Of a DNA stretch of 64,000 nt, positions 37,784 to 57,551 are shown piece after piece. The stretch spans positions 124,001-188,000 of the IMG/VR virus record IMGVR_UViG_3300032268_000986. One strand, 5' to 3'. Each line of letters begins with the position of its first letter. Position 1 is the first letter of the stretch. The notes below the pieces were generated by a model. That model did not search any database and was not told the origin of the DNA. It saw only the letters and a list, made by a program, of their open reading frames with translations. The position numbers and the translations under genes were made by a program.

Positions 37784-38362
37784 CTATTTGACGCCAATGA
37801 TCATGAAACGAGTATATGCAGTTTCAGGATCTTCAAGAGATAGGCTGCCTGAATACAATATCTGACTCAAGGGAAATTGTTGTTGAATATCTTTTGCACT
37901 GAAAAACGGGTTCTCTTCCACATGGTCACGTGCCTGCATGGCCACTAGTGTTCCCGGAGGAATATTCTGAAACCAGTCACTGCCCGCTATGTCGGTCAGG
38001 CTCAGATTGATCACACTGCCTTGGCCGTCCAGTTGTTGGTAGTCAAGACCATTGGCGTCTTTGCGCATGTGTTCAACGCCCTGATATCCCAGTTGATCCA
38101 GCATGGTTTTACCTGTGAACAAACGTTCACTGTTGGTTTCTACATTGATTATCTTGTCTACCTCCAGGGCAGACTGGCGTCTTATCAGCAGAGCCAGGTT
38201 ACTGTACCAAGACCCCAGCACATACATCACAGAAACATAATCGGTAATCTTGGACAACTCCTGGATCAACCACAACTTGCTGAATACCAGGTCTGGTGTA
38301 AAACTACCACTGAAGCTGTAGCCTGAGCTTTCGGCCAGGCCCACTACATCTTCCACAATCAT
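37784..38362 (-). CDS. Class I methyltransferase-like protein with capsid-targeting-like N-terminus
   Basis: VMYVLGSWYS (motif I variant), INVE, TRFMIIG; begins MIVEDVVGLAE. Confidence 0.6.
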   Translation of the reverse strand: MIVEDVVGLAESSGYSFSGSFTPDLVFSKLWLIQELSKITDYVSVMYVLGSWYSNLALLIRRQSALEVDKIINVETNSERLFTGKTMLDQLGYQGVEHMRKDANGLDYQQLDGQGSVINLSLTDIAGSDWFQNIPPGTLVAMQARDHVEENPFFSAKDIQQQFPLSQILYSGSLSLEDPETAYTRFMIIGVK

Positions 38363-39918
38363 TTTTTACGACCCTGACAGTGAGCTCGCTGACTGAATCC
38401 CCGGGGACTGGCGCAGTTGATTGAACTTTTGTATTTTTGACTCCACTTTTCATCAATGTAGTCTTCGTCCACGGGCTGATTTTCTCTACGTTGATAGCTG
38501 GCAGTCATGCCACCCACAAAGTTTTGTGCATCAACTTCGGTCATGTCAGGCTTGTCCATCAGGGGACCACCTGTGACCCAGGCATCGCAGGTTCTGCGAC
38601 TGGCACATTTGAACTTTAGAAACTTGCAGTATCCCAGGTCGCCGGCGTCAATCACACCTTCTGCATCTGCAGGCGAGTCAGCATCAATACCTTGCGCAAT
38701 GCAGTCCAAGGTGTCTTGGCGTATGTCAAATGCCGCACAGTTGCCGCACAGGCTTTGTTTTGCTTCTTCTGCACTGTCAAGATTCCACTCGTCAACTTTT
38801 TTCATCCAGAACTTGCGGTTGGACATGTCTGGGTTGAGTGGGCCATATCCGTATTCGTCAATGGCTTTTTGTCTGTTCTTGAGATTCAGTGTGATGTCCT
38901 GTGTGGCAGGCGGACACTTCTTTTCAGCCTCCGCCACACCTTGTGATTCAAAATTATCTATATTTCTAGAAACTCTACGCTCACTGCCTTGAGCAGGGAA
39001 TCCTGAACTTTGTGATTGCGGCGCAGGTCTTCCTGGGGCATACTTAGATAACTTTTCAGTGGCTTTTTCTCTAGCAATAGTCATCCACATTTGTTGTTGT
39101 CTGCGATCAATAGGCTGGCCACGTGTGGCAACTATTTGTTCATAGATTGCTCGTGCCATTTCCTCTATGTCTTTATTGTGTTGCACACGAGGATCATCTT
39201 GACGCATGTTTTGGAATTCTCTTGAAACATCAACAGGACGTGATTGTGCTATTGCAGATCCAGCTGCACCTGCCACAGCCGCCGCACCTAGTCCACGTAA
39301 GAATCCTCTACGGCTCAAGTCTTCGTCAAGTTCACCGCCAATGGCTGTGTCCAACAGTTTGACAACCGTGGCAGCTAGTCGGGGATTGGTTTGTGTCTTG
39401 GGATACAAGCTCATTACCAGAGCTGTTTTGCGTTGATCATTTAACCGGGGCCAGGCAGCGCGAATTTCTGTGGCCGATGTCATTCCGGGACCAAATTCCA
39501 CAGTGGGCAAGTAGGCCATGTAGGCATGCCGGGCAAATGGTTCTAGTCGGCGAGCACCCATGAGTGGTTGCAGGTATGCAGGTGATCCGTCTTTTTTTAC
39601 ACCACCGGCCTGGGGTGGTTTGTTGGCGTCTTTTTCACTGCGTACAAAGATCAGTCGATCCTGTGCAGGGTCAAATTGAGCAGTGATTTCCTCGGCACGA
39701 AATGGTGATTTGACCTGCACAAAATGTCCAGGCTCAACTCCAGCCAACTTGGCCAGTTTTTCTTTTACAGCAAATGGAAATGGTCTAGCCGATGTGTCAT
39801 TTGTGGCTGCCACAAATACTTTGGCGTCGGGAAATGCTCTGCGGGCAGAGTTGTAAAGGGCTGCATGGCCAGCATGAAAAGGGTGAAACCCACCCGGTAT
39901 AATAACAACGGTAGTCAT
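38359..39918 (-). CDS. Modular protein: HxGH nucleotidyltransferase-like domain, internal Tat-signal module, Cys-rich module, basic C-terminal peptide
   Basis: GGFHPFHAGH; LDE-DLSRRGFLRGLGAAAVAGAAGSAIA; SQGVAE; CGNC...CKFLKFKC..C; KWSQKYKSSINC. Confidence 0.8.
   Translation of the reverse strand: MTTVVIIPGGFHPFHAGHAALYNSARRAFPDAKVFVAATNDTSARPFPFAVKEKLAKLAGVEPGHFVQVKSPFRAEEITAQFDPAQDRLIFVRSEKDANKPPQAGGVKKDGSPAYLQPLMGARRLEPFARHAYMAYLPTVEFGPGMTSATEIRAAWPRLNDQRKTALVMSLYPKTQTNPRLAATVVKLLDTAIGGELDEDLSRRGFLRGLGAAAVAGAAGSAIAQSRPVDVSREFQNMRQDDPRVQHNKDIEEMARAIYEQIVATRGQPIDRRQQQMWMTIAREKATEKLSKYAPGRPAPQSQSSGFPAQGSERRVSRNIDNFESQGVAEAEKKCPPATQDITLNLKNRQKAIDEYGYGPLNPDMSNRKFWMKKVDEWNLDSAEEAKQSLCGNCAAFDIRQDTLDCIAQGIDADSPADAEGVIDAGDLGYCKFLKFKCASRRTCDAWVTGGPLMDKPDMTEVDAQNFVGGMTASYQRRENQPVDEDYIDEKWSQKYKSSINCASPRGFSQRAHCQGRKK
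38928..38942. repeat. GVAE cassette-boundary repeat (variant copy)
   Basis: CCTCCGCCACACCTT shares 13 nt with the 16-mer at 49493, 55816, 56608 and 57217. Confidence 0.8.
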
Positions 39919-39930
39919 ACCGTTATTTAG

Positions 39931-40296
39931 TTAGTATGTGATGGTGACAGAGTTGATGACACCGCCTGAAAAGCCTTCAACTCGTAAGCGTATCCAGGTA
40001 AAGTTTCCGGCAATGGCAGCAGGGTGATAGTCAGTCAGTGGCACAGTGCTGCCATCCCCGTACACATAGGTGGTAAACCAAGCAGCACTATCAGCGGTGT
40101 CGTCCAGTGTGGCTTCCACATAGATGATTCCTTCAAAGTTCTGCACACTGAATGTCAGGGTTTGAATACTGCCGCGACCATGATAGTAGTCGGCCGCAGT
40201 CACAGCTGGTGATGACCAATCTTGACTGCTGCCATCATAATTGCCAGCAGCTTGACCATATGTGGTGGTATCAAGAATGGTTTGTGTGGTGATCAT
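39931..40296 (-). CDS. Hypothetical beta-rich protein (possible virion component)
   Basis: 121-aa ORF, late-gene context. Confidence 0.7.
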   Translation of the reverse strand: MITTQTILDTTTYGQAAGNYDGSSQDWSSPAVTAADYYHGRGSIQTLTFSVQNFEGIIYVEATLDDTADSAAWFTTYVYGDGSTVPLTDYHPAAIAGNFTWIRLRVEGFSGGVINSVTITY

Positions 40297-40463
40297 TACG
40301 CTTGTTCAATTTCAACAATCACGCCGGCACCGGCCAACTCTTCGGCCACGGCCTGAAGCGCATCGCAGATGTCGCTGTTGGCAATCTGCTGATCTGCACT
40401 GTCTTTTTCCTTGATCAATTTTGAGAGTTTGATCACAACTACTTCTTCGTGTATTTTTGCCAT
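40296..40463 (-). CDS. 55-aa hypothetical protein (not in ORF track)
   Basis: MAKIHEEVVVIKLSKLIKE...VIVEIEQA; TAAATA upstream; TAATG overlap with the next gene. Confidence 0.75.
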   Translation of the reverse strand: MAKIHEEVVVIKLSKLIKEKDSADQQIANSDICDALQAVAEELAGAGVIVEIEQA

Positions 40464-40469
40464 AGTGTG

Positions 40470-41135
40470 TTATTTAGCCTGTATTGGTAGTGTTTTTCTA
40501 ATGATCCCGGGAGACACTAGATTCAACATTTGAATGTCACGCACATCGTCATGATCAATAAAAAAGTGACTCTGCACATAAACATGCCGGGATGCGGCGA
40601 GCCGCTCGCGAAACCCCGGGGTCAAACGATAGCAATCGCCTCGATTCAGCAGAAATCTTCGCAGTGCATGCCCTTGCTCTTGCTCCAGCATGCGACCACG
40701 GAAATAACTGCGATACCGGTGTTGTGGTTTTTCCAGTATCACAACATCTCGGGGCAATGCTACCCGAGCTCGAGTACCGTTTCCGTCTGGCTGTGCAGCC
40801 ACCAGCCGGTCAAGATCTGCTAGACTGTTGGTGTACACGTACATCCAGTCACTGTAGAAAATACGCTTGTGGGGTTCTTCAAATGCCGCCAACACATCAC
40901 ACATGTCGTGCAATCGTGCCACCCAGTTGTCATCAATGACTCTAGCCGGGTTTGACCAGCTGTATTTCAACAGTAGAGTGTTTGTTGCACCAACGGCGGT
41001 ACTCACAGCTTCATGGGTGAGAGTGTGCAAGCACCTGGCTCCACGCATGGCAAAGTTGTAGCCAAATTCGTACTGATCATAGAACAGCCGATCTCGCACA
41101 CGATCTTCAAATGTTGTCAAGTCTAATGATGCCAT
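40470..41135 (-). CDS. Hypothetical protein
   Basis: 221-aa ORF following clpA. Confidence 0.7.
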   Translation of the reverse strand: MASLDLTTFEDRVRDRLFYDQYEFGYNFAMRGARCLHTLTHEAVSTAVGATNTLLLKYSWSNPARVIDDNWVARLHDMCDVLAAFEEPHKRIFYSDWMYVYTNSLADLDRLVAAQPDGNGTRARVALPRDVVILEKPQHRYRSYFRGRMLEQEQGHALRRFLLNRGDCYRLTPGFRERLAASRHVYVQSHFFIDHDDVRDIQMLNLVSPGIIRKTLPIQAK

Positions 41136-43371
41136 CGCTGCCTACTGTTTGTGTGCTGGGGGAAATTACCACAAATTCAACTTGATCATCTACTAGATCA
41201 GCCACAACTTCGCAATCTCTAAGTTGATCAAACAAGATGCGTTTGCTGAGTGGCACACGCAACAACTCGTCAATCTTGCGGCTCAAGGGTCTGGCACCCA
41301 ACTTGCTGTCGTAGCCCTTTTTGGCCAACAAGTCCACGGCAGCTTCGCTCACAGTGAGTCGAATGTTGCGCTGGGCCAGGCTGGTTTTGAGATCGTCTAC
41401 AAATTTTACCACGACCTTTTTAATGGACAAATTGTCCAGCTTTTGGAACTTGACCACTGAGTCAATACGGTTTCGCATTTCGGGCTTGAAAAACTCTTTT
41501 ACTGCTCGATCATCTTCGCCGGTTTTCTCAAAGCTACCAAAGCCAATGTTGTTGGTTTCACTATCTCGGGCGCCCAGGTTTGATGTCATGATGATGATGC
41601 AGTTCTTGCAATTGGCTTTCTTGCCATTTGAACTGGTGATAACACCTTCGTCCAGCATCTGCAACATGATGTTGGTGACGTCGGGGTGAGCCTTTTCAAT
41701 CTCGTCAAACAGCACAATGGCAAAGGGATTTTTGCTGAGATCTGAAATCAGTTTGCCACCGCCTATGTTGCCATCTTCAAAACCCACGTAGCCTGGCGGC
41801 GCACCAATCAAGCCGCTGACCGAGTGACGTTCTTGAAATTCACTCATGTCGTATTTCAGCAAGGGCATGTCAAGATTTGCACTCAACAATCGAGCCAGTT
41901 CAGTCTTGCCTGTGCCAGTGGGTCCTGTGAACAAGAAACTGGCCATGGGACGCTTGTCATTGCCAATGCCAGCGAAGGAAATATACACACGTTCCAGCAC
42001 TGTGTCCACAGCTGAATCTTGCCCGTATAACTTTTGTTTGATATTGCTTTCAAGTTCCACAATTTTGGCTGATCGTTCGTTCTGCAGACGGTCTGTGGGC
42101 ACACCGGTCACACGACTCAGTTGAGCTTCAATCAAGGCACGAGTAATGGTCACACAGCCTTGATCCCGCACACGTTCACGAGCACAGGCACCGTCAATCA
42201 AGTCAATTGATTTGTCGGGATTCTTTTTGTCATGAATGTAACGATTTGCCAGTTCCACAGCAGTGGTCATGGCCTCGGTGTCAATCAACACATTGTGGAA
42301 TGTTTCCAGGCGTGGTGAGAGACCAATCAGGATCTGTTCTGTGGTCACTGCATCGGGTTCATCAATGCTGAGCTTGTGAAAGCGGCGCATCAAGGCACGA
42401 TCTTTTTCAAAGCTCTCGTAAAACTCTTCCCAGGTGGTTGATGCCACTACCTTGAGCATGCCCTTGGTGATGGCCGGTTTCAGCATGTTGGCAAAGTCCA
42501 AGCTGGAGTTTGATCCAGAACCGGCGCCACGCATGGTGTGAGCCTCGTCGATGAACAAAATGGTCTTTTTCTTGGTCTCCAAGGCTGCAATCACCTGTTT
42601 GAATTTTTCTTCAAACTCACCGCGGTACTTTGACCCAGCCAGCAAACTACCAATTTCCAGGCTCCACACTTCGTGATCTTTGAGAAACTCGGGCACACGT
42701 CCTGCATGAATTTCCTGGGCCAGTCCATCCACAATGGCAGTTTTGCCCACGCCGGGATCGCCCACCATGAGCACATTGGCTTTGAAGCGTCGAGCCAACA
42801 CCGTGATCATGTCTGACAGTTCGGTGCTGCGACCAATCATGGGTTCCAGTTGATTTTTTGCAGCACGAGCAGACAAATTCATGCAGTATTCTTCCAGCAC
42901 AGCATCGGCCTGTTGCTCAGACATCACTGCCGAAGATTCTTGACTGTAGTTTTTGCTCCAGAACTCAACAAATTCTGCTTTCTTCACTCCATACTTGAGC
43001 AAGAAATAGTGTGCATGACTGTTGGTTTCGGCCATGATAGACAGATACAAGTCAATCGTGGTCAATTGACGTCGTCCAGTAAACATCACTTGTACATTGG
43101 CGCGATTAAAAATGCGTTCCAGTGACTGTGTTTTTTTAGGTTGTGTGTCTGGAGTGTTGCTGATCATGCCCACTAGACTGCCAAGATATGCTGTTATGTC
43201 AGCATCCAGGTTGACCACGTCGGCACCAAAGCGTTCCAGAGTCTTACGGAATGGGTCAAATCGAATCATGCTCAACAACAGGTGTTCAGTCAGCACATAC
43301 TCGTGTTTTTGGTCACGAGCAATTTTCACGGCCTGTTCAACAACAAATTCAATATCGGGGCTATTTTGCAT
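41107..43371 (-). CDS. clpA: ClpA-type Hsp100 AAA+ chaperone
   Basis: Clp N-domain (EHLLL), Walker A GDPGVGKT and GPTGTGKT, FIDEAH, FDEIEKAH, no ClpB middle domain, IGF loop. Confidence 0.92.
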   Translation of the reverse strand: MQNSPDIEFVVEQAVKIARDQKHEYVLTEHLLLSMIRFDPFRKTLERFGADVVNLDADITAYLGSLVGMISNTPDTQPKKTQSLERIFNRANVQVMFTGRRQLTTIDLYLSIMAETNSHAHYFLLKYGVKKAEFVEFWSKNYSQESSAVMSEQQADAVLEEYCMNLSARAAKNQLEPMIGRSTELSDMITVLARRFKANVLMVGDPGVGKTAIVDGLAQEIHAGRVPEFLKDHEVWSLEIGSLLAGSKYRGEFEEKFKQVIAALETKKKTILFIDEAHTMRGAGSGSNSSLDFANMLKPAITKGMLKVVASTTWEEFYESFEKDRALMRRFHKLSIDEPDAVTTEQILIGLSPRLETFHNVLIDTEAMTTAVELANRYIHDKKNPDKSIDLIDGACARERVRDQGCVTITRALIEAQLSRVTGVPTDRLQNERSAKIVELESNIKQKLYGQDSAVDTVLERVYISFAGIGNDKRPMASFLFTGPTGTGKTELARLLSANLDMPLLKYDMSEFQERHSVSGLIGAPPGYVGFEDGNIGGGKLISDLSKNPFAIVLFDEIEKAHPDVTNIMLQMLDEGVITSSNGKKANCKNCIIIMTSNLGARDSETNNIGFGSFEKTGEDDRAVKEFFKPEMRNRIDSVVKFQKLDNLSIKKVVVKFVDDLKTSLAQRNIRLTVSEAAVDLLAKKGYDSKLGARPLSRKIDELLRVPLSKRILFDQLRDCEVVADLVDDQVEFVVISPSTQTVGSDGIIRLDNI

Positions 43372-43427
43372 ATGGTTCCTTGAAATACTTTCAATAATTT
43401 TAACACACTGGCCTGGCTGATGCAACC

Positions 43428-44228
43428 TTATTGGCAGTGTTCCTTGATGGCCTGTGTCACAGCGTCGGGCACATGATCGGGTATGTATGCTGTCAGGCGC
43501 AGCATGAGATCGCCACGACCTGTGCCAGAATCTTGCAGTCCACGCTGTCGCAGCCGCATCACAGTTCCAGGTTGGCTGGCAGCAGGTATGTTGATGGTCA
43601 GTTCATTGCCCAAAAAATCACTCAGGTCAACATCGCCGCCTGTGATCAATTTCCAGATTGAAATCCTAAAATCAGTGTGCAAGTTCAAACCATCTCGGCG
43701 CCACGCAGGATCGGGCTGCACTCGATACTGCACCACAAGGTCTTGTCCCCCGGGCGCTACACCACTGTATTGTACATTGTCCCCGTCCTGGATACCACGG
43801 GGCACTGAAATTTCCACAGTGGTGGTACCGGCACTGCTGCCAATGGACACACGTCGAGTGGATCCCAGTGCAACATCACGCAACTGTATAGTGACCGACA
43901 TGCGAACATGACTGCGTCGAGGCTGTGCGCCACCGGGAAATCCTCCAGTGAATCCACCCTGACGAAACATGCTGAACAAGTCATTGATGTCCACTCCAGC
44001 CGGGTGAAACCCACCACCCCCGCCGCCCTGGAATGGCGAGGGATTGTCATAGGCTGCTCGTTTGTTGGGATCACTCAGGGTGTCATAGGCTACCTGAATT
44101 TCTTGAAATCGAGCTGTGTCGCCACCTTTGTCGGGATGATGCTGGCTGGCCAGTCGACGGAAAGCACGTTTGATTTCATCGGCAGCAGCGGTTCGAGCAA
44201 CTCCTAGAGTTGCATAGTGATCGGTCAT
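43428..44228 (-). CDS. DnaJ/CbpA-type co-chaperone (no Zn finger)
   Basis: J-domain with HPD (HHPDKGG), G/F-rich linker, C-terminal GDL domain. Confidence 0.92.
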   Translation of the reverse strand: MTDHYATLGVARTAAADEIKRAFRRLASQHHPDKGGDTARFQEIQVAYDTLSDPNKRAAYDNPSPFQGGGGGGFHPAGVDINDLFSMFRQGGFTGGFPGGAQPRRSHVRMSVTIQLRDVALGSTRRVSIGSSAGTTTVEISVPRGIQDGDNVQYSGVAPGGQDLVVQYRVQPDPAWRRDGLNLHTDFRISIWKLITGGDVDLSDFLGNELTINIPAASQPGTVMRLRQRGLQDSGTGRGDLMLRLTAYIPDHVPDAVTQAIKEHCQ

Positions 44229-44234
44229 AGAAAA

Positions 44235-44280
44235 GGTCCAGTACAACATTAATTATACTGGACCTGCGGATGATAATCAA
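44235..44280 (-). promoter_or_regulatory. Sigma70 promoter whose -10 box lies within a terminator-like inverted repeat
   Basis: TTGATT (44280-44275)-17-TATAAT (44257-44252); GGTCCAGTA/TACTGGACC stem followed by TTTT. Confidence 0.65.
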
Positions 44281-44499
44281 TTATTTTTTGACTGGAACTG
44301 CTGTGGTGTCTTCGAGTTTTTTGTGAACTTTGACTTCTTTGCAATTCTGTTTGACTTTGCCAGTCTTGGCATCCTTGACTGGTTGACCTTGTTTGTCCTT
44401 GACATCCACACAGACTTGTTTGGTTTCTTTCTTGGGCTCGTCAGCAATGACAAATTGACTACCTAGAGCTAGTGTTAATGCGATCAATAAGTGTTTCAT
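44281..44499 (-). CDS. Small secreted Lys-rich protein
   Basis: Signal peptide MKHLLIALTLALGSQFVIA; two Cys. Confidence 0.7.
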   Translation of the reverse strand: MKHLLIALTLALGSQFVIADEPKKETKQVCVDVKDKQGQPVKDAKTGKVKQNCKEVKVHKKLEDTTAVPVKK

Positions 44500-44501
44500 G
44501 T

Positions 44502-48597: not shown

Positions 48598-49713
48598 TCA
48601 GCAGTTCCACTTGCGCAGTGCCAGAGCCTTGCGAGTGGGTTTACCATTGGGCTTTTTCATGGGGCCTTTGACGCCGCCCATTCTGGCACAAAATGATTTT
48701 CTGCGCTTGGCTGCTTTGGAACCTGGCTTGAGTTTTGAAGGCTTGGTGGTCACTGCCATTTGCAGTTTGCTACCGGGATTCTCTCTGCGATAGCTGGCCA
48801 CACCCTTGGCATTGAGTCCGCCCTTTTTGCTCTTGCCTTCTTTTCTGCGCCAGGCAGCAGTTTCATACAGCACGTTGTCTGGCAGGGCTTCAAACTGTTC
48901 CCATACTAGATCTTTACTCACACGATTTTTCACTGCCATTTCTTCGGCCAGTTGATCCATGGCTTCAAACATCTCATCCACTTCAGGATCCACTTCGTCC
49001 GACGCTTCTTCAGAGTACATGTAGTCCCACACTGCGACCAGCATGCTCTTGGCCACAGCAATCTTTTCCTGGCACCATTCAGGCAAGTTGTCGCCTGAGT
49101 CAATCAAGTCGTCGATACCTCGAACAGCACGATCCAGGGTTTCTAGATTGTTGTCGGCCATGCCGGCTTCGTCGTCATACTCGGGATTGTAGTTTTCTGG
49201 CATGGTTTGTTCACCAAAACGTTGACGATAGCTGTTGGGGTTCATTGACGATCTGGTCCCGACCACAGCATTGCCTTCGCCACTTAATAACAAATCATAC
49301 ATGAGTTTGATTACTTTTAAGGGGCTATTCATTCTTTCCAGGGCGTTTTTAAACCATTCAACTTTTTCTGGTTTCATTGGCTTGGAACTGGGCTTGCTGA
49401 TCAGCGCCAGGGCCTGAGCCTTTAGCGTGGACAAGTCTCTGATTTGTTCAAGACGTTTTAAATCCTCAATATCAAAGTTGTAATCGGCTTTGCCTTCCGC
49501 CACACCTTCTGACTTGTTGCCATAGTTGCCAGCGCCTTTTTTGCGGCACTGAACCAGGCGTCCTGATGCATAGGCTGACGGCCATACTTTTGCACTAGAC
49601 TTGACCTTGTAGTAACAGGCGTCTTTCTTTTCCATCATCAGCATTTCGCTGAACATGGGGCCACCACAGTGTGGGCATGACTGTTTGGATTCAACCAAGT
49701 CTTTGAATTTCAT
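48598..49713 (-). CDS. Modular putative internal head polyprotein (basic Cys-containing modules)
   Basis: MKFKDLVE start; DACYYKVK..WPSAYASG; SEGVAEG; DNLPEWCQEKI; C-terminal KKGGLNAKG..RRKSFCARM. Confidence 0.78.
   Translation of the reverse strand: MKFKDLVESKQSCPHCGGPMFSEMLMMEKKDACYYKVKSSAKVWPSAYASGRLVQCRKKGAGNYGNKSEGVAEGKADYNFDIEDLKRLEQIRDLSTLKAQALALISKPSSKPMKPEKVEWFKNALERMNSPLKVIKLMYDLLLSGEGNAVVGTRSSMNPNSYRQRFGEQTMPENYNPEYDDEAGMADNNLETLDRAVRGIDDLIDSGDNLPEWCQEKIAVAKSMLVAVWDYMYSEEASDEVDPEVDEMFEAMDQLAEEMAVKNRVSKDLVWEQFEALPDNVLYETAAWRRKEGKSKKGGLNAKGVASYRRENPGSKLQMAVTTKPSKLKPGSKAAKRRKSFCARMGGVKGPMKKPNGKPTRKALALRKWNC
49493..49508. repeat. GVAEG cassette-boundary 16-mer
   Basis: CCTTCCGCCACACCTT exact copy. 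Confidence 0.9.
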
Positions 49714-50273
49714 TTGCGTTTTCCTTTGGTACTTACATTTATGGCTGCGCCTGATCGATTGGCATTGGGATCTTCTCGGCGCTTTCTTGCGGCTGCACTG
49801 GCACGACCCTTTTTGCCCAGGGCATGTGCCTTGGCCTGTGGCAAACACTTGGGCTTGCCTTCTTTGCTACTGCCTCTGGCACAGTCTCCACGTATTTTGC
49901 CGTCGGGTCCAAAACGAACCCATTTTTGTTTGAACCAGTCACGTAGATTTTCTTCCAGCTCTTGTGTGGACATTTTCTTTTCATATCCCTGCACAGAGGT
50001 GGTCTTGTCGGGGTCAGGCGCACCTTGCAATTTGGCAGCTGGCAAAAACTTCCGTATACTCTGCAGGGTCAGCGGACCCATCACGCCATCCACATCCAGG
50101 TTGGCACGGTACTGTTGATTCAGCATCTGTTGTATTCTGCGAACTTGATCTGACGTCATGTCTTGTTCTTCACTCACAGGCACACAATTGGGTACCATTC
50201 GGGAACCTTTTTTCTTCATGCCTTGACGACGATATCCGGTCCAGCAGGCTTCCAATATTTCTCTATATCTCAT
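49710..50273 (-). CDS. Modular putative internal head protein with a peptidoglycan-binding-like module
   Basis: MRYREILE; ACWTGY..VPNCVP; IQQMLN..LDVDGVMGPLT (PG-binding pattern); LEE-NLRDWFKQKW..KPKCLP. Confidence 0.75.
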   Translation of the reverse strand: MRYREILEACWTGYRRQGMKKKGSRMVPNCVPVSEEQDMTSDQVRRIQQMLNQQYRANLDVDGVMGPLTLQSIRKFLPAAKLQGAPDPDKTTSVQGYEKKMSTQELEENLRDWFKQKWVRFGPDGKIRGDCARGSSKEGKPKCLPQAKAHALGKKGRASAAARKRREDPNANRSGAAINVSTKGKRK

Positions 50274-50911: not shown

Positions 50912-50938
50912 ACTGCTATTTAGTTGTCTATTATAGAA

Positions 50939-51736: not shown

Positions 51737-51752
51737 TTACGTTTCCTTTGGG

Positions 51753-51977
51753 TTAATCTTTATCTGTGACTATGACAGCAGTTTGGTCAACCCAAACTAT
51801 TCTGCCCTCACAGGCAATGTTCCATTTGGTTACACCGTGCTCGTGTGTGCATTCAGTGTAGGTTTCTCCAATGATGCGAACATCTGTGGCCAAGTGTTCC
51901 ACACCATTTTCAAATATGCGCCACACCAAGTCACTGCCGTGGTGTTGTGTATTGAATCTAACGTGATACTTGTTCAT
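51753..51977 (-). CDS. Small hypothetical protein
   Basis: 74-aa ORF in the operon. Confidence 0.65.
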   Translation of the reverse strand: MNKYHVRFNTQHHGSDLVWRIFENGVEHLATDVRIIGETYTECTHEHGVTKWNIACEGRIVWVDQTAVIVTDKD

Positions 51978-52624
51978 CTGGGCAAGTGAGCCAAAAAATC
52001 ATTTGTTTTTTCAGTTCTGACTCCGGTAAGCTGTAGTGTGACTCGGGCATGGTGTCCTGCGTTGGCTGTTGAATGTGGAATGTTGGCCCAGTCAAACGTG
52101 GTCACAGATCCGGCCCGCCACTGATTCCAGTGATGGTTGCCGTATTCCCAGAACTGTCCCGGTTGCCAGGCCGTGAGCTGAACAAATATTCGCATCACAC
52201 GGGCAGGATCTTCGGGTAGCCATTTCTGCAGTTTGTCAATGTGCAGGTTCCACACTTCGCCGAGCCGTTGCACGTGAATGCGAGCCATGCAGTCTGCCAG
52301 TCCAAATTGATCCACAATCTGTTTCAATGAATCGGGAATTTGCCAATTCATGTGAGTAATGATCATTTGGGGATCAGCGCCCACCCGAGAGATATCATAT
52401 TCTTCGGCTGCCAGGTCCTCGGACGGAACATGCACACCCTTGCCTTTGTAGCCACGTGTGGCCCAGGTAGCAGGTTGTGAATTGGCAATTATCAAGTCCA
52501 AATCTGCCAGCCACGTGGGTTCAATGTGTCCCAGTTGAATCAGTACATCTTCGGCACGGTCCTCACGAGTGGGGTCAAAATGATAGTTTGATTTTTGTTT
52601 TGTGGTGTCCCAACTGCTGTTCAT
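51974..52624 (-). CDS. Cupin/2OG oxygenase-like protein
   Basis: NLHIDK (HxD), HSTAN.G..ARVTLQLTG. Confidence 0.55.
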   Translation of the reverse strand: MNSSWDTTKQKSNYHFDPTREDRAEDVLIQLGHIEPTWLADLDLIIANSQPATWATRGYKGKGVHVPSEDLAAEEYDISRVGADPQMIITHMNWQIPDSLKQIVDQFGLADCMARIHVQRLGEVWNLHIDKLQKWLPEDPARVMRIFVQLTAWQPGQFWEYGNHHWNQWRAGSVTTFDWANIPHSTANAGHHARVTLQLTGVRTEKTNDFLAHLPR

Positions 52625-53250
52625 ATCACTGTTACCTTGATGTCGTTGTTTGTGTAGTTTTGTCTATAATTGCTGTCGGGCCAGGCAATGTTCAATGCAT
52701 CACATAATTCCAAATTGGTAGATACTGGTTTTGATCCGCGATGTTTGTAATCCCACATGGCATCAGTGATGCCTGTGTTCTGTTGTTTAATTATGCCGGA
52801 CATGGTCTTTAAATCTTTATAGTATGTATCATACAATGGATAGGTGATGTCAAAATGTCCACACTTGACCCACCAGCCCAGACAAGCATCATCTGAGCGA
52901 TGTACCAACACAATAGGCGACTCAGGCCAGAGACTCTTTAGTGTGCCAATCTGTGTGGAAAAACAGTGACTTTTGATAATGCGAATACCCGAACCACAAA
53001 ATGGTCTATCAAATTCAGCCTCCAGCATTTCTTTTTTATATTGTGCTAGATTGTCAAATCCTGTGCCAAACTCCATGCCTGGATCCCAGTAAGCACCCAG
53101 ATGCATCAGGTCCATTCGGCCCGCAGCGTCATGGTAGTAGGTACGTGCATCAGAGTAGTCGGTTTGATCAATGCTGGGCGAATAATAAATGTTTTTTACC
53201 ACACTGCTCCATTTTGAGCCTGGGGCACCGGCCACAAAGATGTATTTCAT
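52621..53250 (-). CDS. Hypothetical protein, sulfotransferase-like
   Basis: IFVAGAPGSKWS, IIKSH, IVLVHR pattern of P-loop sulfotransferase folds. Confidence 0.45.
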   Translation of the reverse strand: MKYIFVAGAPGSKWSSVVKNIYYSPSIDQTDYSDARTYYHDAAGRMDLMHLGAYWDPGMEFGTGFDNLAQYKKEMLEAEFDRPFCGSGIRIIKSHCFSTQIGTLKSLWPESPIVLVHRSDDACLGWWVKCGHFDITYPLYDTYYKDLKTMSGIIKQQNTGITDAMWDYKHRGSKPVSTNLELCDALNIAWPDSNYRQNYTNNDIKVTVI

Positions 53251-54209
53251 TGGTTGGGATCAATTCTACGTGCAATGGGTTGCCAGGTCTGTTGCAGGCG
53301 AGCCATGCTGGCTCTAACACCAGCTGGACTGTGTTCTTCGGGTGTGATATACATCATGTTTTCACGAAATTTAGCACCGGCTTCTGCTGACCGTATTGCC
53401 GGCACAAACTGGTCACGATACCATGCTTGTATTTCAGCAGGTGTACCTGGTGGCAACACCATGTTCCAGCAGCCGTGTATGCTGAGTCCAGGGGCGGCTC
53501 GGCTCATTAAAGGAATGTGCTCAAGTCCTGGTAGAGTGCGTGTGTCAGCAATGCCGATAAACTTGAGAAGCCCGGCCTGCGCATGTGGATAGCCCACGGC
53601 CACTGGAGTCACACCAAATTCCACATGTCCGCCCATGACATCTGTCAAGGCCTGTGCCGGTCCTTTGTACATCACAGTTTGCAAGTTGTCGCTGCCAGGC
53701 GCACTGACTCGGTCCACAAGATATTCCACTGCCAGCTTGTGTCCGCCGCCACCAATGGCCACCATTAGTCGCTGTCGATTACGAATGGCAGCCACAAACT
53801 CTTCTGGAGTGTTGATTCGACTGCTGGGGTGTGCCCAGAATGCCAAGGGGCTGCGGGCAATGTTGGCAATGGGTTCTAGATCCATGGGATTATATTTTAT
53901 CATTTTTGGATACCATATCTCAGGTGTGACCCAGTTTGATTGGCAAGCAGGCACAGCAATGGTGTGCCCATCTCGAGGCTGTGTGACAAAGTGATTGATG
54001 GCAATGTTGCCATCAGCACCGGGACGATGTTCTGGCTTGAACACTGCACCAGTTTTCTTCTCCACAATGTCGGCCACGATGCGGAACGAGATTTCGTTGC
54101 CGGCGCCGGGTCCATTGGGGAATATCACAGTCACAGGTTTTGAGGGCTGCCATGCAAATGCTATGGCAGGCGCCAACAACAGCGCAGCAAATAATTTTTT
54201 GATCAACAT
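53247..54209 (-). CDS. TctC/Bug-family tripartite tricarboxylate transporter substrate-binding protein
   Basis: Signal peptide (AIAFA-W), PGAG.E, RPGADGNIA, DGHT, YKGPAQALTDVMGGHV, PPGTP. Confidence 0.9.
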   Translation of the reverse strand: MLIKKLFAALLLAPAIAFAWQPSKPVTVIFPNGPGAGNEISFRIVADIVEKKTGAVFKPEHRPGADGNIAINHFVTQPRDGHTIAVPACQSNWVTPEIWYPKMIKYNPMDLEPIANIARSPLAFWAHPSSRINTPEEFVAAIRNRQRLMVAIGGGGHKLAVEYLVDRVSAPGSDNLQTVMYKGPAQALTDVMGGHVEFGVTPVAVGYPHAQAGLLKFIGIADTRTLPGLEHIPLMSRAAPGLSIHGCWNMVLPPGTPAEIQAWYRDQFVPAIRSAEAGAKFRENMMYITPEEHSPAGVRASMARLQQTWQPIARRIDPNQ

Positions 54210-54218
54210 GTTTTTCCT

Positions 54219-54291
54219 TAAATAATAGTGTTGATTTCAACAAGAGCCACAAATTTTTTGTGGTACTGTTTAAAATTCTACTCTATTTATA
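54219..54291. promoter_or_regulatory. Face-to-face late-promoter motifs
   Basis: TAAATA on + (54219-54224) and TATAAATA on - (54291-54284), with a CCACAAA/TTTGTGG inverted repeat between them. Confidence 0.5.
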
Positions 54292-54300
54292 AAATTTTCT

Positions 54301-55020
54301 ATGAACACCAAAATTTTTAACCTTTTGCAAAAAAATTTGCACACAGCATTTGCTCTGCCCAAGTATGCCAACATTGTGATTGATGCCAACACTCGGGTGC
54401 AAGACCTGCCCTGGACTCCGGCTCGATACCGCAAGTTCAAGGATGCAGTGGATGCTGAATTGAGCCTGCCCTGTGACTACATGGGCACCTTGCGTGAGAT
54501 CACGCATGACCTAAGTGAGCGATATATTCATCGCTTCTTTGCTGAAATATGGAAACCTCGAACCAATGACTATGATTACACTGGCTGGCAACTGGCTGAA
54601 GAAATTAACCAACTCAATCCGCGATCGGTACTGGACGTGGGTTGTGGATACCATCCGTTCAAAGGGAGAATTAATAATCTCACTGGGATCGATCCTTACA
54701 ACAACTGTGCTGATTATATGGTTGACATCTTGGAATACGTGGGATCACATGACGTTGTCATCGCGTTGGGTTCAATAAACTTCAATGATCGCGAAGAAAT
54801 TGAAGCACGATTTGCTCGCTGCGTGAGTGTGCTGGATGTGGGCGGCCGGTTCTATCTACGTGCCAATCCTGGTATCACACATCGCACAGGACCTTATGTG
54901 GAAATATTCCCCTGGACGTTTGAAGTGGTCAAAGAATTTGAATCACGATACAACCTGCGCTTGGACACCTTCAAAAAGGATGCCAACGACCGACTGTACT
55001 TTGTTTATACTCGACTGTGA
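54301..55020 (+). CDS. Class I SAM-dependent methyltransferase
   Basis: VLDVGCG, TGIDPY, VLDVGGRF. Confidence 0.8.
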   Translation: MNTKIFNLLQKNLHTAFALPKYANIVIDANTRVQDLPWTPARYRKFKDAVDAELSLPCDYMGTLREITHDLSERYIHRFFAEIWKPRTNDYDYTGWQLAEEINQLNPRSVLDVGCGYHPFKGRINNLTGIDPYNNCADYMVDILEYVGSHDVVIALGSINFNDREEIEARFARCVSVLDVGGRFYLRANPGITHRTGPYVEIFPWTFEVVKEFESRYNLRLDTFKKDANDRLYFVYTRL

Positions 55021-55653
55021 TCAGCGCCCGGCCACTGCCAAGGCAGCACCGTTGTTGAAACTCTGACTGTGCGACTGCGCCTGACGCAGACCCTTGCGCT
55101 TTGACCACTCATATCCAGCACGATGGCCCGAGCAGTCCTTGGTACAGGGCGAGCCTAGGAACGACAGCTCTTGCAAGTGTTCGGCTGACTCGCCCAGTTC
55201 AATTTCCGGGGTCACGCTCTGAAACGTGCGATCCATCACAGCAGTCTTGAACTGAAACTCTGAGGTTTGTTCGTTGTTGCGGCGTAGGCCAATGCTGAGT
55301 CCAGTATCGGGATCACGCACCCAGACCTTGCTGGCAGCTGGCATGCGCATGAGCTGATCCTGGATGCTGGGCAGTCGGCGCAGAGCTTGATCCACAATGC
55401 CAGGATCTATTTCACGAAAATACACCTGTTCAATGGCATGGCTGTCTACGTCAATGGTCAAGTCGCCAATGTGTAAGTGTCCTTGTGATGTTTCTGCTAT
55501 GTGTGATTTTGATTCACCGCCTCCATCACCGCCACCTTCGCCAGAATCTTCACTGCCGTAGTAGGCATACCCTGGGAAAAAATATCCACCATAACGACTG
55601 GATTTTTTCCCACGACGTTTTTTGCGCTCGGTGACAAACTCTTGGGCTCTCAT
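55021..55653 (-). CDS. Modular putative internal head protein
   Basis: MRAQEFVTE start; basic/Gly-rich segment; IAE and LQE sites; C-terminal PCTKDCSGHRAGY. Confidence 0.75.
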   Translation of the reverse strand: MRAQEFVTERKKRRGKKSSRYGGYFFPGYAYYGSEDSGEGGGDGGGESKSHIAETSQGHLHIGDLTIDVDSHAIEQVYFREIDPGIVDQALRRLPSIQDQLMRMPAASKVWVRDPDTGLSIGLRRNNEQTSEFQFKTAVMDRTFQSVTPEIELGESAEHLQELSFLGSPCTKDCSGHRAGYEWSKRKGLRQAQSHSQSFNNGAALAVAGR

Positions 55654-57551
55654 TTTTTTGGTGGTTGCACTGCTGTGGGCACGTTACGGTACACACGTTT
55701 TTGTGGGTCGTACACTGTTTTAAGTGGGCCCATGCCTGCCAGTTTCTTTACTCTGGCCACCATGTCTTGATAGTCGTCACCGTAGTCGGCTTCGGGTGGC
55801 TCAGACTTCCGGTTGCCTTCCGCCACACCTTGTGATACGCTTTCAAACTCTGGCTTTTTATTTGAAGAAAGTCTATCTAATTTTTCAATAGTGCTACCTG
55901 CATTTCTAAAAAACTGTGCTGATTCTTTTTGGTATAATTCTGGATTATTTTTTAATACTTCTACACTTTGCTTTGCCTTAGGGTAGATGCTATTAACATA
56001 ATCTTTAGCATTGTTTGCATCAATAAACCTCTTAATAGATGCGGCAACTGCTTTAAATAAATCACTATTATCTAACTGTCTATCTTTACAAATTGCGTAT
56101 ACTATTAAAGCATCTATTAGGACATCAAATTCTTCTTTACCAAGATTGCCCATTGCAGATTTTTGTTGTTGTTGAGATTGGAGTGCAGAATTATATTTTT
56201 GATACGCTTCGCTTATACCTGCTCTATACGCATTTAAAAAATCCTGATAACGATTTTTCATATTAGTTAGAAACGCTGACACTAACTTATTCTCTTTATC
56301 TAACCCGGATGCCTCATATGCTTGTTGATTGCAAGTATCAATCACATTTTTTGCATTATATGAATTTGTTTGTCTACAATAGTCAGAGACCCAATTACCA
56401 ACATTAGTGACTAACCAATTTCTTAAATCATATCCTGTGTCCTGGTGAATACGACCCATTGTTCTTGTGGCCAAATCTGTAGCATATTTTGTCCATTGCG
56501 TAACTTCCTGAGCGTCTGCTTTTGTTGCAACACCACCGGCTGCACCTGTCACAGCCGCCGCACCCAAGCCCTTTAGGAATCCTCTACGGTCTATTTCTTC
56601 TAATGAGCCTTCCGCCACACCTTCTTGCATATTGTTTAACAATTCCTGCGCTTTTTCAATGCTGATCATGTATCTACCAAAGCGGTTAGGGTCTGCAGCC
56701 TTTTGTAGATATTCTTTGCTAAAGCCCTGTGGTCCGCTTGGTGAATCTATTCTAGCAGGAGCTGTGACTTGTTGCTTGCCATTTGCTCTGGCCTGTAGTT
56801 CTGCCTTGGCATCAGCAACACTGACCATTGGGCGAGGGTGTTCACCTGAAGCAACTTGTTGTAGATATTGTGTATTATAATTACTCAAGTCTGCCGCCTG
56901 AGCATGACCCATACCACCACCCATTGCCATGGCACCTGCTAATGCAGCTGAGCCCAATGCGCTTTTCCACCCTTCAGTTAAATCAGTTACACCAAAACCA
57001 ATATAGCTGTCACCGTGTTCGTCGCCTGATCGAACAACAAATGCGCCGCCCTCTTCACTTTCAATTTCACCAATTTCCCAACCTTGGCGAGCTAGAGCTT
57101 GTTCAACTTGTTGTTGTACAGCATCATCACCATTGTACCACATACGAGCGTACTTGTGTAGTGTATCTTCTTCACCACTGTCACCGCCATCACCTGGCGC
57201 AAATTCATTCAACGAGCCTTCCGCCACACCTTGGCTTTCACTGACTTCGGCAGCGGTCAGGTACACAGTCCAGGTCTTGCCCGAACTGGCGGATTTCCGT
57301 TCAGCCCACTGCTTCATGTTTTCAAGATTGCTGCGCTCTTCTGCACTGTCTGCTGTGCCACGGCCGGCAACCACTTTCCATGGTCTGCCATTGATGGCAA
57401 TTTGTATATTGTTGCGCTCGTGTGCCAGTTCTTGACGTAGGCCACGATGGTCATCGCCACGGCCCATGCCGCTCACACTGCTGTCGTAGTCACGCTGATA
57501 AGCATCACGACGGTCAAAGCGACTTTCTTGTGTTATTTGACTGACTTTCAT
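55650..57551 (-). CDS. 633-aa modular polyprotein with three GVAEG boundaries and internal Sec- and Tat-type signal peptides
   Basis: MKVSQITQE; QGVAEGSLNE; LTE-GWKSALGSAALAGAMAMGGGMGHAQA; EGVAEGSLEE-IDRRGFLKGLGAAAVTGAAGGVATKADA; QGVAEG. Confidence 0.8.
   Translation of the reverse strand: MKVSQITQESRFDRRDAYQRDYDSSVSGMGRGDDHRGLRQELAHERNNIQIAINGRPWKVVAGRGTADSAEERSNLENMKQWAERKSASSGKTWTVYLTAAEVSESQGVAEGSLNEFAPGDGGDSGEEDTLHKYARMWYNGDDAVQQQVEQALARQGWEIGEIESEEGGAFVVRSGDEHGDSYIGFGVTDLTEGWKSALGSAALAGAMAMGGGMGHAQAADLSNYNTQYLQQVASGEHPRPMVSVADAKAELQARANGKQQVTAPARIDSPSGPQGFSKEYLQKAADPNRFGRYMISIEKAQELLNNMQEGVAEGSLEEIDRRGFLKGLGAAAVTGAAGGVATKADAQEVTQWTKYATDLATRTMGRIHQDTGYDLRNWLVTNVGNWVSDYCRQTNSYNAKNVIDTCNQQAYEASGLDKENKLVSAFLTNMKNRYQDFLNAYRAGISEAYQKYNSALQSQQQQKSAMGNLGKEEFDVLIDALIVYAICKDRQLDNSDLFKAVAASIKRFIDANNAKDYVNSIYPKAKQSVEVLKNNPELYQKESAQFFRNAGSTIEKLDRLSSNKKPEFESVSQGVAEGNRKSEPPEADYGDDYQDMVARVKKLAGMGPLKTVYDPQKRVYRNVPTAVQPPKK
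55816..57232. repeat. Three exact copies of the GVAEG 16-mer
   Basis: CCTTCCGCCACACCTT at 55816, 56608 and 57217. Confidence 0.92.

Follow-up and report, generated by a model that had tools for sequence, protein, structure and literature searches.

Putatively masked export signals inside the modular proteins of an environmental jumbo phage

A giant environmental phage strings protein modules together with a fixed linker, and some of these modules begin with bacterial export signals that lie behind a probable protease cut site, which suggests, without proving it, that cutting switches export on. The window examined here is a stretch of 64,000 nucleotides from IMG/VR record IMGVR_UViG_3300032268_000986 (positions 124,001 to 188,000), a 343-kb jumbo phage contig whose DNA polymerase is closest to those of phages Phosso and Atu_ph07.

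Internal signal segments in two open reading frames

The initial annotation reported twin-arginine signal peptides in the middle of two ORFs, each directly after a hydrophobic-x-Glu site, as well as a Sec-like peptide with the same placement, and this observation was confirmed. In ORF519 (519 aa), residues 197-199 are LDE and are followed at residues 200-224 by DLSRRGFLRG...AIA and then Q. In ORF633 (633 aa), residues 317-319 are LEE and are followed at residues 320-347 by IDRRGFLKG...ADA and then Q, while DLTE at residues 190-193 precedes the Sec-like segment at 194-219, which ends in AQA. Both Tat segments pass the curated cutoff of NCBIfam TIGR01409 TAT_signal_seq (23.2 and 20.3 bits against 16.7), although their Pfam TAT_signal (PF10518) scores of 17.9 and 20.4 bits fall below the gathering score of 22.7. 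The description of the two Tat segments as near-identical in DNA was overstated, since they are 78% identical over 65 nt with a nearly identical core of about 26 nt. The label "virion polyproteins" was likewise not an observation, and nothing in the window shows that these proteins are in virions. The features of ORF519 are as follows.

38359..39918, minus strand: ORF519, a modular protein with no N-terminal leader; tblastn matched different parts of it separately in different phages.
39349..39918, minus strand: module 1, a predicted HxGH nucleotidyltransferase (about aa 1-190), with CTP_transf_like at E 1.7e-4, TIGR00125, and weak PDB matches to phosphopantetheine adenylyltransferases; it was found on its own in an uncultured 484-kb phage.
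39322..39330, minus strand: LDE (aa 197-199), a predicted Glu-specific cut site before Tat signal 1, at a position conserved in homologs.
39247..39321, minus strand: internal Tat signal 1 (aa 200-224), with SRRGFLRG, an Ala/Gly-rich core, and AIA before Q.
38929..38940, minus strand: linker GVAE (aa 327-330), here followed by A.
38551..38916, minus strand: Cys-rich module (aa 335-456), which is free-standing in other phages, where depositors annotate it "high potential iron-sulfur protein" (tblastn, 53% identity, E 8e-35, to Actinomycetia phage DSL-LC01); a Pfam search gave no HiPIP hit.
38362..38457, minus strand: IDE site (aa 488-490) followed by a basic Cys/His tail module, KWSQKYK... (aa 491-519), with 77% identity to cyanophage ORFs; relatives show the same junction, LDE then KW.

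ORF633 carries five modules on one chain. BLAST segment borders piled up at residues 100-119, 180-199, 300-329, and 550-599, and the AlphaFold model has confident domains separated by segments with pLDDT below 50, so that module borders, low-confidence model segments, and linkers coincide.

55650..57551, minus strand: ORF633.
57525..57551, minus strand: N-terminal leader MKVSQITQE, which matches the leader pattern that 49 of 91 distinct homolog N-termini match.
57219..57230, minus strand: linker 1, GVAE (aa 108-111), with pLDDT below 50 at residues 100-124.
56973..56984, minus strand: DLTE (aa 190-193), the end of module 2 and a predicted cut site, with the same L-T-E as the end of the 65-residue T4 gp23 propeptide (residues 63-65; propeptide length from PMC5694885).
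56895..56972, minus strand: internal Sec-like signal (aa 194-219), with GWKS, an Ala/Gly/Met core, and AQA before A; about 65 distinct homologous contexts were found, all internal, and pLDDT is below 50 at residues 196-219.
56610..56621, minus strand: linker 2, GVAE (aa 311-314).
56595..56603, minus strand: LEE (aa 317-319), the second predicted cut site, directly before Tat signal 2; the string GVAEGSLEEIDRRGFL recurs in many homologs.
56511..56594, minus strand: internal Tat signal 2 (aa 320-347).
55830..56510, minus strand: cargo of Tat signal 2, a predicted all-helical domain (aa 348-574) with pLDDT mostly above 90 and no Foldseek PDB match with E below 0.1.
55818..55829, minus strand: linker 3, GVAE (aa 575-578), before a 55-aa C-terminal module.

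To determine whether the Glu site consistently precedes the signal, we compared 162 homologous proteins, which contained 105 distinct signal-like contexts. Of these, 101 have [LIVMF]-x-E within the 10 residues before the first basic residue, against 13.4% of random 10-residue windows, and in 99 of the 101 the Glu lies 3-5 residues before that basic residue. None of the signals is N-terminal, and none starts before residue 12. The pattern is therefore more than chance and extends well beyond this window.

The initial annotation offered internal translation starts as an alternative, and a TTG does lie two codons before RR in ORF519, while the linker contains GTG and strings that resemble a Shine-Dalgarno site (AGGTG, GGAGG). 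However, about half of roughly 35 distinct DNA contexts have no ATG, GTG, or TTG in the 15 codons upstream of the signal, including the window's own Sec-like signal. The P3 codons are CTT three times, GTT once, and ATG once, and CTT and GTT are not start codons. In ORF633 the codon two places before RR is ATA. The GTG inside the linker sits at variable distances from the signal, and 169 of 172 linker copies have no signal after them. Separate production of each signal-bearing module from an internal start is thus disfavored and, as a general rule, very unlikely.

A conserved linker and N-terminal leaders

The larger phenomenon, which the initial annotation missed, is the GVAE-G linker system. 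ORF519 and ORF633 belong to a large class of beads-on-a-string proteins found in one clade of environmental jumbo myoviruses, in which independent modules are joined by a short disordered linker, [K/Q/E]-[Q/E/K]-G-V-A-E-G. The linker fits the same hydrophobic-x-Glu rule and is often doubled with a second site, as in GVAE-GSLEE-IDRR, GVAE-GELDE-GWK, and GVAE-GSLNE-F. Most full-length relatives start with a leader of 8-10 residues, M-[K/R/N/I]-x-x-[D/E/Q]-hydrophobic-hydrophobic-x-E, and 49 of 91 distinct homolog N-termini match this pattern, against 0.67% of internal Met positions. Only 6 of 66 window ORFs of 150 aa or more match it. Further leaders and linkers in the window are found in the following ORFs.

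55021..55653, minus strand: ORF210, overlapping the end of ORF633, with leader MRAQEFVTE (nt 55627-55653) followed by a basic stretch; the leader differs from the first 10 residues of T4 IPII and IPIII by one deletion and conservative changes.
48598..49848, minus strand: modular ORF with leader MKFKDLVE at the ATG at 49713, linker GVAE at 49495-49506, and a C-terminal DUF6321.
31201..32646, minus strand: ORF481 (GNAT domain), with leader MRAQEFIVD.
22405..23307, minus strand: ORF300, with leader MIVSELFNE.
49710..50273, minus strand: ORF187, with leader MRYREILE.

The N-termini of several T4 proteins have the same shape, with IPII and IPIII starting MKTYQEFIAE then A and gp24 starting MAKINELLRE then S, and the literature says that gp21 removes these stretches. 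Free-standing forms join a leader directly to a signal. Related locus L004 has MRAQEFVNE then DLTRRGFL, and related loci L217 to L219 have M[K/R]INEII.E..LDE then GWKEK, and these leaders are net acidic, which is unusual for a Sec n-region. In PA5oct, a 73-aa protein encoded next to the portal gene starts MKINDIITE and carries the product "structural protein" with the note ESI-MS/MS, although the leader is rare in PA5oct and no statistical link between leader and virion proteome could be made there.

The linker is conserved even at the nucleotide level. The exact 12-mer GGTGTGGCGGAA is used in 32 of 63 linker contexts found by protein search, against 0.8% expected from codon usage, and GCG is used in 42 of 63, against a background of 8%. 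The 16-mer occurs in at least 120 IMG/VR loci, with 172 different contexts, and the same module end is joined to a dozen different continuations. One possibility is that the linker is only a recombination joint, a stretch of microhomology that spreads and shuffles modules, with the internal signals as passengers that have little or no function in their present place. We consider this improbable as a full account, because the signals keep their full consensus (RRGFLKG, an Ala/Gly-rich core, A-x-A) across relatives that have diverged to 40-60% identity, which argues for selection on them. It also does not explain the Glu site before signals that are not preceded by a linker, such as DLTE then GWK. 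This reading is compatible with the explanation proposed below rather than exclusive of it.

Possible exposure of the signals by cleavage

We propose, tentatively, that all three elements are cut sites for a Glu-specific protease: the leader, the linker (V-A-E then G), and the hydrophobic-x-Glu in front of each signal. The most likely enzyme would be the phage's T4 gp21-type prohead protease acting inside the prohead, in which case the leader would act like the T4 capsid targeting sequence. Cutting would release separate modules and, for the minority that begin with a Sec-like or Tat signal, would create the free N-terminus with a basic n-region that such signals normally have. Until then, the signal sits behind acidic residues and upstream domains, which would keep the protein in the producer cell's cytoplasm, where it is available for packaging. 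After ejection into a new host, the released modules would be exported by host Sec or Tat and trimmed at their A-x-A sites. Our analysis establishes the motifs, their positions and conservation, the modular mosaic, the disorder at the linkers, and the lack of start codons, whereas cleavage, the identity of the protease, packaging in virions, ejection or injection, export, and what the cargo does are inferred from sequence alone. The interpretation in the initial annotation, that cleavage during head maturation unmasks the signals for export after injection, is therefore only partly supported.

Homologs of gp21 exist in the nearest cultured relatives, namely Phosso (58.6%), Atu_ph07 (51.7%), PA5oct (51.9%), and K64-1 (34%), and more than 600 IMG/VR stretches encode one. 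Related contig IMGVR_UViG_3300027708_000035 carries both the protease (locus L158) and linker proteins (locus L265). The window's own contig, however, was not among the 80 loci returned per scan for the protease, no protease domain was found in the window ORFs that were scanned, and no linker-bearing genes lie within 6-8 kb of the protease genes examined. In addition, T4 gp21 sites are loose (hydrophobic-x-Glu) and the linker is far more conserved than that, even in its codons, so it must have an additional or different role. ORF519 lacks the leader, and if the linker in ORF519 were cut, the Cys-rich module would be separated from the Tat signal. Only 3 of 172 linker copies are directly followed by a signal, so export is a side branch of the system. 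The phage also encodes proteins with ordinary N-terminal signals, such as the TctC-family protein at 53247-54209, and in this view masking would be a choice and not a limitation.

These proteins may instead be true polyproteins that are cut in the cytoplasm of the infected cell by a dedicated Glu-specific protease, of phage or host, that has nothing to do with the capsid, with signal-bearing modules exported during the same infection. The linker is a well-defined motif of 6-7 residues in disordered segments and in specificity looks more like the cut sites of RNA-virus polyprotein proteases than like the loose gp21 sites. The modules include cytoplasmic-type enzymes (nucleotidyltransferase, GNAT, and source names such as a glycosylase), and no linker genes lie next to the head genes examined. 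Nevertheless, no candidate protease was found in the window ORFs that were scanned, and a polyprotein used only for expression needs no short N-terminal leader, yet most of these proteins have one that resembles T4 propeptides. Because the phage already uses plain N-terminal signals for proteins exported during infection, masking would serve no purpose, and we regard this reading as doubtful.

A further possibility is that no cleavage occurs and that the N-terminal modules stay in the cytoplasm while the internal Tat or Sec segment inserts as a loop and the C-terminal part is moved across the membrane, as happens in class V (FecR) and class IV (Streptomyces Rieske proteins) Tat substrates; signal peptidase may then release the exported part at the A-x-A site. 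Internal Tat signals preceded by a folded N-terminal domain are an established class (PMC13673990), which the initial annotation had missed. ORF519 fits that class well, with a cytoplasmic-type nucleotidyltransferase, a Tat signal, and a C-terminal part that includes the Cys-rich module annotated in other phages as an iron-sulfur protein; such proteins are typical Tat cargo. ORF519 also has no leader, and 112 of 123 signal-bearing homologs have only one signal. This reading does not explain the near-universal hydrophobic-x-Glu at a fixed distance before the signal, the same grammar at linkers and leaders, or the acidic residues next to the n-region. It also fails on topology for ORF633 (Sec-like signal, then Tat signal), for related locus L202, and for the 11 of 123 signal-bearing homologs that carry two or three signals in series, nearly all with an A-x-A or A-x-S site, since these cannot all face the same way in one uncut chain. 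Although we consider it unlikely overall, it remains a real rival for proteins with a single signal.

Comparison with known systems

The T4 internal proteins (IPI, IPII, IPIII), Alt, and gp24 carry capsid targeting sequences that are removed by prohead protease gp21, which cuts after Glu. As in the window, which has MRAQEFVTE, MKVSQITQE, and MKFKDLVE, a short N-terminal leader ends in hydrophobic-x-Glu, and diverse, fast-changing cargo shares only the leader (PMC3012670). Here, however, there are many modules per chain with internal sites, a strongly conserved linker, and export signals on some modules, while T4 cargo acts in the cytoplasm, and packaging and cleavage are only inferred for the proteins described here.

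The ejection proteins of SPN3US and phiKZ-type phages are packed in the head of a giant phage and cut after Glu by the prohead protease, often at several sites. SPN3US gp47, which the initial annotation did not mention, provides an experimental precedent, as it loses a propeptide to its prohead protease and the mature fragment begins with a predicted transmembrane helix thought to meet the host membrane (PMC5694885). The motif there is A-x-E or S-x-E, the phage lineage is different, gp47 has a membrane helix rather than a cleavable Sec or Tat signal with an A-x-A site, and there is no shared linker and no module shuffling.

Class V (FecR) and class IV (Streptomyces Rieske proteins) Tat substrates likewise have a twin-arginine signal inside the chain, after a folded N-terminal domain or after membrane helices (PMC13673990). 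Those signals are uncleaved membrane anchors and occur once per protein, whereas the signals described here keep A-x-A sites, follow a conserved Glu site, and can occur two or three times in series.

Polyvalent proteins of phages and conjugative elements (Iyer et al. 2017; PMC5512222) are also highly mosaic phage proteins built from many unrelated domains and proposed to be packaged and injected. That paper mentions neither linkers nor signal peptides (0 occurrences of each term), and its hallmark domains, such as MuF, ART, and the zincin-like peptidase, were not seen here.

Finally, the bipartite transit peptides of thylakoid lumen proteins work in the same way as the cleavage proposed here, in that a first protease removes an N-terminal part and exposes a Sec- or Tat-type signal for a second membrane. 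PMC2132503 is a related paper. This is a eukaryotic organelle import pathway with no evolutionary relation to the proteins described here, and the masking part there is itself a targeting signal.

Internal signals and the Glu sites that precede them

The family-B DNA polymerase encoded in the window, which matches contig IMGVR_UViG_3300032268_000986 (342,865 bp) at 100% identity, is closest to those of jumbo myoviruses, namely Sinorhizobium phage Phosso (50%), Agrobacterium phage Atu_ph07 (46%), and the 121Q/Rak2-like phages (43%). The window carries many auxiliary genes, including those for a ClpA/B-like ATPase, DnaJ, PhoH, SAH hydrolase, ferritin, GTP cyclohydrolase I, two PTPS proteins, a TctC-family protein, and a GTA-type holin. 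Only a few genes look structural, near 57.5-62.8 kb, and nothing in the window shows that the two ORFs carrying internal signals, ORF519 and ORF633, are virion proteins. The features noted are as follows.

3854-6030, minus strand: two PTPS-family genes and GTP cyclohydrolase I side by side, a set typical of 7-deazaguanine (queuosine-type) base synthesis, which suggests DNA modification
16752-19418, minus strand: family-B DNA polymerase
32651-36772, minus strand: 1373-aa protein with a nucleotidyltransferase and an amidoligase domain, starting MNIHELDSF, which may be another member of the modular, polyvalent class
38359-39918, minus strand: ORF519
41107-43425 and 43428-44249, minus strand: ClpA/ClpB-like double AAA+ ATPase with a Clp_N domain, and a full DnaJ, just upstream of ORF519; a phage-encoded unfoldase and co-chaperone could bear on the handling of packaged or ejected proteins
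Starting at 44499: 72-aa ORF with an ordinary N-terminal signal peptide
53247-54209, minus strand: TctC-family periplasmic binding protein with an ordinary N-terminal signal peptide
55650-57551, minus strand: ORF633
57548-58213: hit to a PHROG 'virion structural protein'
59426-62776, minus strand: 1116-aa ORF with internal repeats of 61 nt and 201 nt and no family match, which sits next to a Laminin_G_3 ORF and the PHROG hit and looks fibre-like

Translation of both ORFs confirmed the observation made in the initial annotation, that export signals lie within the two chains directly after hydrophobic-x-Glu sites. In ORF519, LDE at residues 197-199 is followed by a Tat-type signal at 200-224. 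In ORF633, DLTE at 190-193 is followed by a Sec-like signal at 194-219, and LEE at 317-319 by a Tat-type signal at 320-347. All three signals end in A-x-A. The Tat segments carry SRRGFLRG and DRRGFLKG, each followed by an Ala/Gly-rich core and then by a signal peptidase site (AIA then Q, and ADA then Q) that is kept in homologs, and they score 23.2 and 20.3 bits against the curated cutoff of 16.7 for NCBIfam TIGR01409, although they fall just short of the gathering score of Pfam PF10518. The claim that they are near-identical in DNA did not hold, since the two segments are 78% identical over 65 nt. They also depart from class I-III Tat signals, which lie at the N terminus of the precursor.

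To determine whether this arrangement is shared, we searched for proteins related to ORF633 and found 480 relatives, which typically share only 7-50% of the length at 70-99% identity, a strongly mosaic picture. Among 162 retrieved proteins there are 105 distinct signal-like contexts, 22 of them with RR-x-F, and the signals start at residues 12-841 and never at the N terminus. In 101 of the 105, a hydrophobic-x-Glu tripeptide lies within the ten residues before the first basic residue, compared with 13.4% of random windows, and in 99 of those 101 the Glu is 3-5 residues upstream. Even short, free-standing versions keep an acidic leader before the signal: related locus L004 has MRAQEFVNE then DLTRRGFL, and loci L217 to L219 have M[K/R]INEII.E..LDE then GWKEK. 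Internal translation starts, the alternative raised in the initial annotation, are unlikely, as about half of roughly 35 distinct DNA contexts have no ATG, GTG, or TTG within 15 codons upstream, and the P3 codons seen are CTT, GTT, and ATG.

Other searches gave little. A DNA search of both ORFs against 50,697 phage records and a tblastn search with ORF633 returned no match, and PHROGs gave no hit for either ORF. A sequence search of the PDB gave only weak adenylyltransferase hits, and Foldseek searches of the PDB with the ORF633 model and with its module 2 alone gave nothing with E below 0.1.

A modular architecture joined by the GVAE linker

The initial annotation missed a linker that runs through these proteins. 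The peptide GVAE, usually followed by G, occurs five times in the window, always in frame in minus-strand ORFs (38929-38940, 49495-49506, 55818-55829, 56610-56621, and 57219-57230), and relatives have up to six copies per protein. Residues at the G, V, and E positions are invariant, while the sequence on either side varies freely, and one module end (...EKAQELLNNMQE) is joined to a dozen different continuations. BLAST segment borders on ORF633 pile up at residues 100-119, 180-199, 300-329, and 550-599. The AlphaFold model shows confident domains (pLDDT around 90) separated by segments below 50, and these fall on the three linkers and the two signals, apart from the N terminus and one loop inside module 3. 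ORF633 is therefore five modules on a string.

ORF519 has four or five modules: a nucleotidyltransferase, then a Tat signal with a module of about 100 residues, then a Cys-rich module, then a short basic tail, and each part is found separately in other phages. Although depositors annotate phage homologs of the Cys-rich module as high-potential iron-sulfur proteins, that annotation is the only link to this family, since no Pfam or NCBIfam HiPIP hit was found at E up to 0.01. The 29-residue basic Cys/His tail (38362-38448, residues 491-519, KWSQKYKSSINC...) is 72-77% identical to ORFs of Synechococcus phages S-CAM9, S-PRM1, and DSL-LC02, resembles the DUF6321 tail at the C terminus of ORF 48598-49848, and in relatives is also preceded by hydrophobic-x-Glu. 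We considered module 2 of ORF633 (residues 113-192) as a dedicated masking domain, but only about 17 of 39 distinct copies precede a signal, and the alignment that suggested this role was biased by our choice of sequences; the idea was rejected.

The linker is also conserved as DNA. In 63 distinct linker contexts found by protein search, codons are skewed far beyond background usage, with GGT in 56 of 63 (background 37%), GTG in 46 of 63 (background 33%), GCG for Ala in 42 of 63 (background 8%), and GAA in 57 of 63 (background 81%), and the exact 12-mer is present in 32 of 63 against 0.8% expected. The 16-mer AAGGTGTGGCGGAAGG occurs in at least 120 IMG/VR loci (L223 to L342). Of 175 copies, 170 are in the GVAEG frame inside open frames of 100 aa or more, in 172 different contexts, and only three of those are directly followed by a signal. 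The linker is therefore also a nucleotide-level element, and most plausibly, on sequence evidence alone, it is the joint at which modules are recombined, although an RNA-level signal or recent spread are also possible reasons. That the linker may be mainly a recombination joint is compatible with each of the other readings considered here.

N-terminal leaders and the candidate prohead protease

Of 91 distinct N termini among the larger homologs, 49 fit the pattern M-x(2,3)-[DEQN]-hydrophobic-hydrophobic-x(0,2)-E, whereas only 0.67% of internal Met positions do. Within the window, 6 of 66 ORFs of 150 aa or more fit this loose pattern: ORF633 (MKVSQITQE), the neighboring ORF210 (MRAQEFVTE, followed by a basic stretch), the ORFs starting at 49713, 50273, and 23307, and one (MASLDLTTFE at 41135) that may be a chance match. 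ORF519 has no such leader. The T4-type head proteins that are targeted to the capsid and processed by gp21 have an N-terminal propeptide of about 10-20 residues ending in hydrophobic-x-Glu. Among the T4 proteins read from GenBank, IPII and IPIII begin MKTYQEFIAE then A, gp24 begins MAKINELLRE then S, gp22 begins MLKEQLIAE, and gp23 residues 63-65 are L-T-E. According to the literature, the first ten residues of IPIII suffice for head targeting, the gp23 propeptide is 65 residues long, and gp21 and its giant-phage counterparts all cut after Glu (PMC9026906; PMC5694885). The leader, the linker (V-A-E then G), and the sites before the signals (L-T-E, L-E-E, L-D-E) all fit that grammar.

T4 gp21 has homologs in Rak2-like jumbo phages (K64-1, 34%). 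An environmental homolog from the same sampling project (locus L097, 6001-6621) is closest to those of Phosso (58.6%), SCTP-2, PA5oct, and Atu_ph07. More than 600 IMG/VR stretches encode relatives, and the 80 kept are 84-100% identical to the L097 homolog. One contig, IMGVR_UViG_3300027708_000035, carries both the protease (locus L158) and linker proteins (locus L265). Two partial scans did not recover the gene from the window's own contig, so its presence there is inferred, and no linker genes were found within 6-8 kb of the protease genes inspected.

Leader-like N termini also appear near head genes of related phages. In Pseudomonas phage PA5oct, a 73-aa protein encoded between the portal gene and the protease gene (PA5oct record 82921-83142; 22922-23143 of locus L343) starts MKINDIITE, is marked as detected by ESI-MS/MS, and sits where T4 has gene 67. 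In the two of six PA5oct regions examined, however, the leader was too rare to be linked to the virion proteome, and this was the one clear case. In the environmental clade, the small ORF after the portal gene (loci L107, L110, L116, and L158, about 6475-6830) starts MLL.EF.YF.., which is leader-like, and L110 has a 67-aa ORF after the capsid gene that starts MRINELIFE. The T4 late-promoter string TATAAATA occurs three times in the window (0.73 expected), at 19488-19495, 24977-24984, and 54284-54291, upstream of the DNA polymerase gene, a radical-SAM ORF, and the TctC-family gene, respectively, and not upstream of the modular ORFs.

Proteolytic unmasking as a tentative model and its relation to known systems

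The interpretation offered in the initial annotation, that cleavage during head maturation unmasks export signals that then act after injection, is partly supported. Three points favor cleavage. First, a Glu site at a fixed distance before the signals has no role in ordinary signal peptides. Second, ORF633, related locus L202, and 11 of the 123 signal-bearing homologs have two or three signals in series, and signals that all need their N-side in the cytoplasm cannot coexist in one uncut chain. Third, the phage also encodes ordinary N-terminal signals, in the TctC-family protein and the 72-aa ORF. Masking therefore looks deliberate, and it would keep a secretory module in the producer's cytoplasm, which is what packaging into a capsid requires. 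We have high confidence that the pattern itself is real and non-random, but cleavage, packaging, ejection, and TatABC-dependent export are inferred, and we hold the full chain from prohead protease through capsid and unmasking to export in the next host only tentatively.

Internal Tat signals that function uncut are an established class (class V, FecR; class IV, Rieske proteins; PMC13673990), in which a single internal Tat signal, its N-side facing the cytoplasm, is preceded by a folded domain or by an even number of membrane helices. This reading fits ORF519 quite well, since it has no leader, an enzyme at its N terminus, a single internal Tat signal, and a Cys-rich C-terminal part. It does not explain the Glu site, and it fits neither ORF633, in which one Sec-like segment precedes the Tat signal, nor the 11 homologs with serial signals. 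Cytoplasmic polyprotein processing by another protease cannot be excluded, and the strongly defined linker would suit it, but no protease was found among the window ORFs scanned and this reading gives the leader no purpose.

In its most far-reaching form, which is possible but doubtful on present evidence, a widespread clade of environmental jumbo phages would pack its capsid with combinatorially shuffled polyproteins. The prohead protease would cut these into modules, some of them secretory proteins whose Sec or Tat signals become active only after that cut, and the phage would deliver ready-made periplasmic or envelope-acting proteins into the next host at the moment of infection using the host's own export machinery. 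The linker would double as the recombination joint that generates new combinations. If this is right, it adds a new route by which a virus can act on the bacterial envelope, as proteins carried in the particle would reach the periplasm within moments of infection, before any phage gene is expressed, which bears on superinfection exclusion, envelope defence, and counter-defence. It would also show dsDNA phages making systematic use of a polyprotein strategy, with a defined linker serving as both cut site and shuffling joint. The linker and leader are simple, searchable marks that identify hundreds of candidate injected proteins in metagenomes, turning a vague class (internal or polyvalent proteins) into a testable catalogue. 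Even if the capsid part is wrong, two observations stand and appear undescribed in the papers searched, the conserved Glu site in front of more than 100 internal signals and the nucleotide-level conservation of the linker. Literature searches for the linker string, for signal peptides in ejection proteins, and for phage polyproteins returned nothing that describes this system, and the papers searched contain neither the linker nor signal peptides at protease-generated N termini of phage proteins.

The individual parts, however, are known: capsid targeting leaders, Glu-specific prohead proteases, polyvalent proteins, and internal Tat signals. Their combination is not known from the papers searched. 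As in the polyvalent proteins of Iyer et al. (2017), with 2-15 unrelated domains in one phage polypeptide, ORF519 and ORF633 join several modules with a mosaic distribution, but Pfam, PHROGs, and NCBIfam found none of the hallmark effector or anchor domains (MuF, portal fusion, ART, zincin-like peptidase, and others), and the gene context is only partly structural, with the PHROG hit at 57548-58213. An experimental precedent for the proposed unmasking is SPN3US gp47, whose propeptide is removed by the prohead protease and whose mature form begins with a transmembrane helix.
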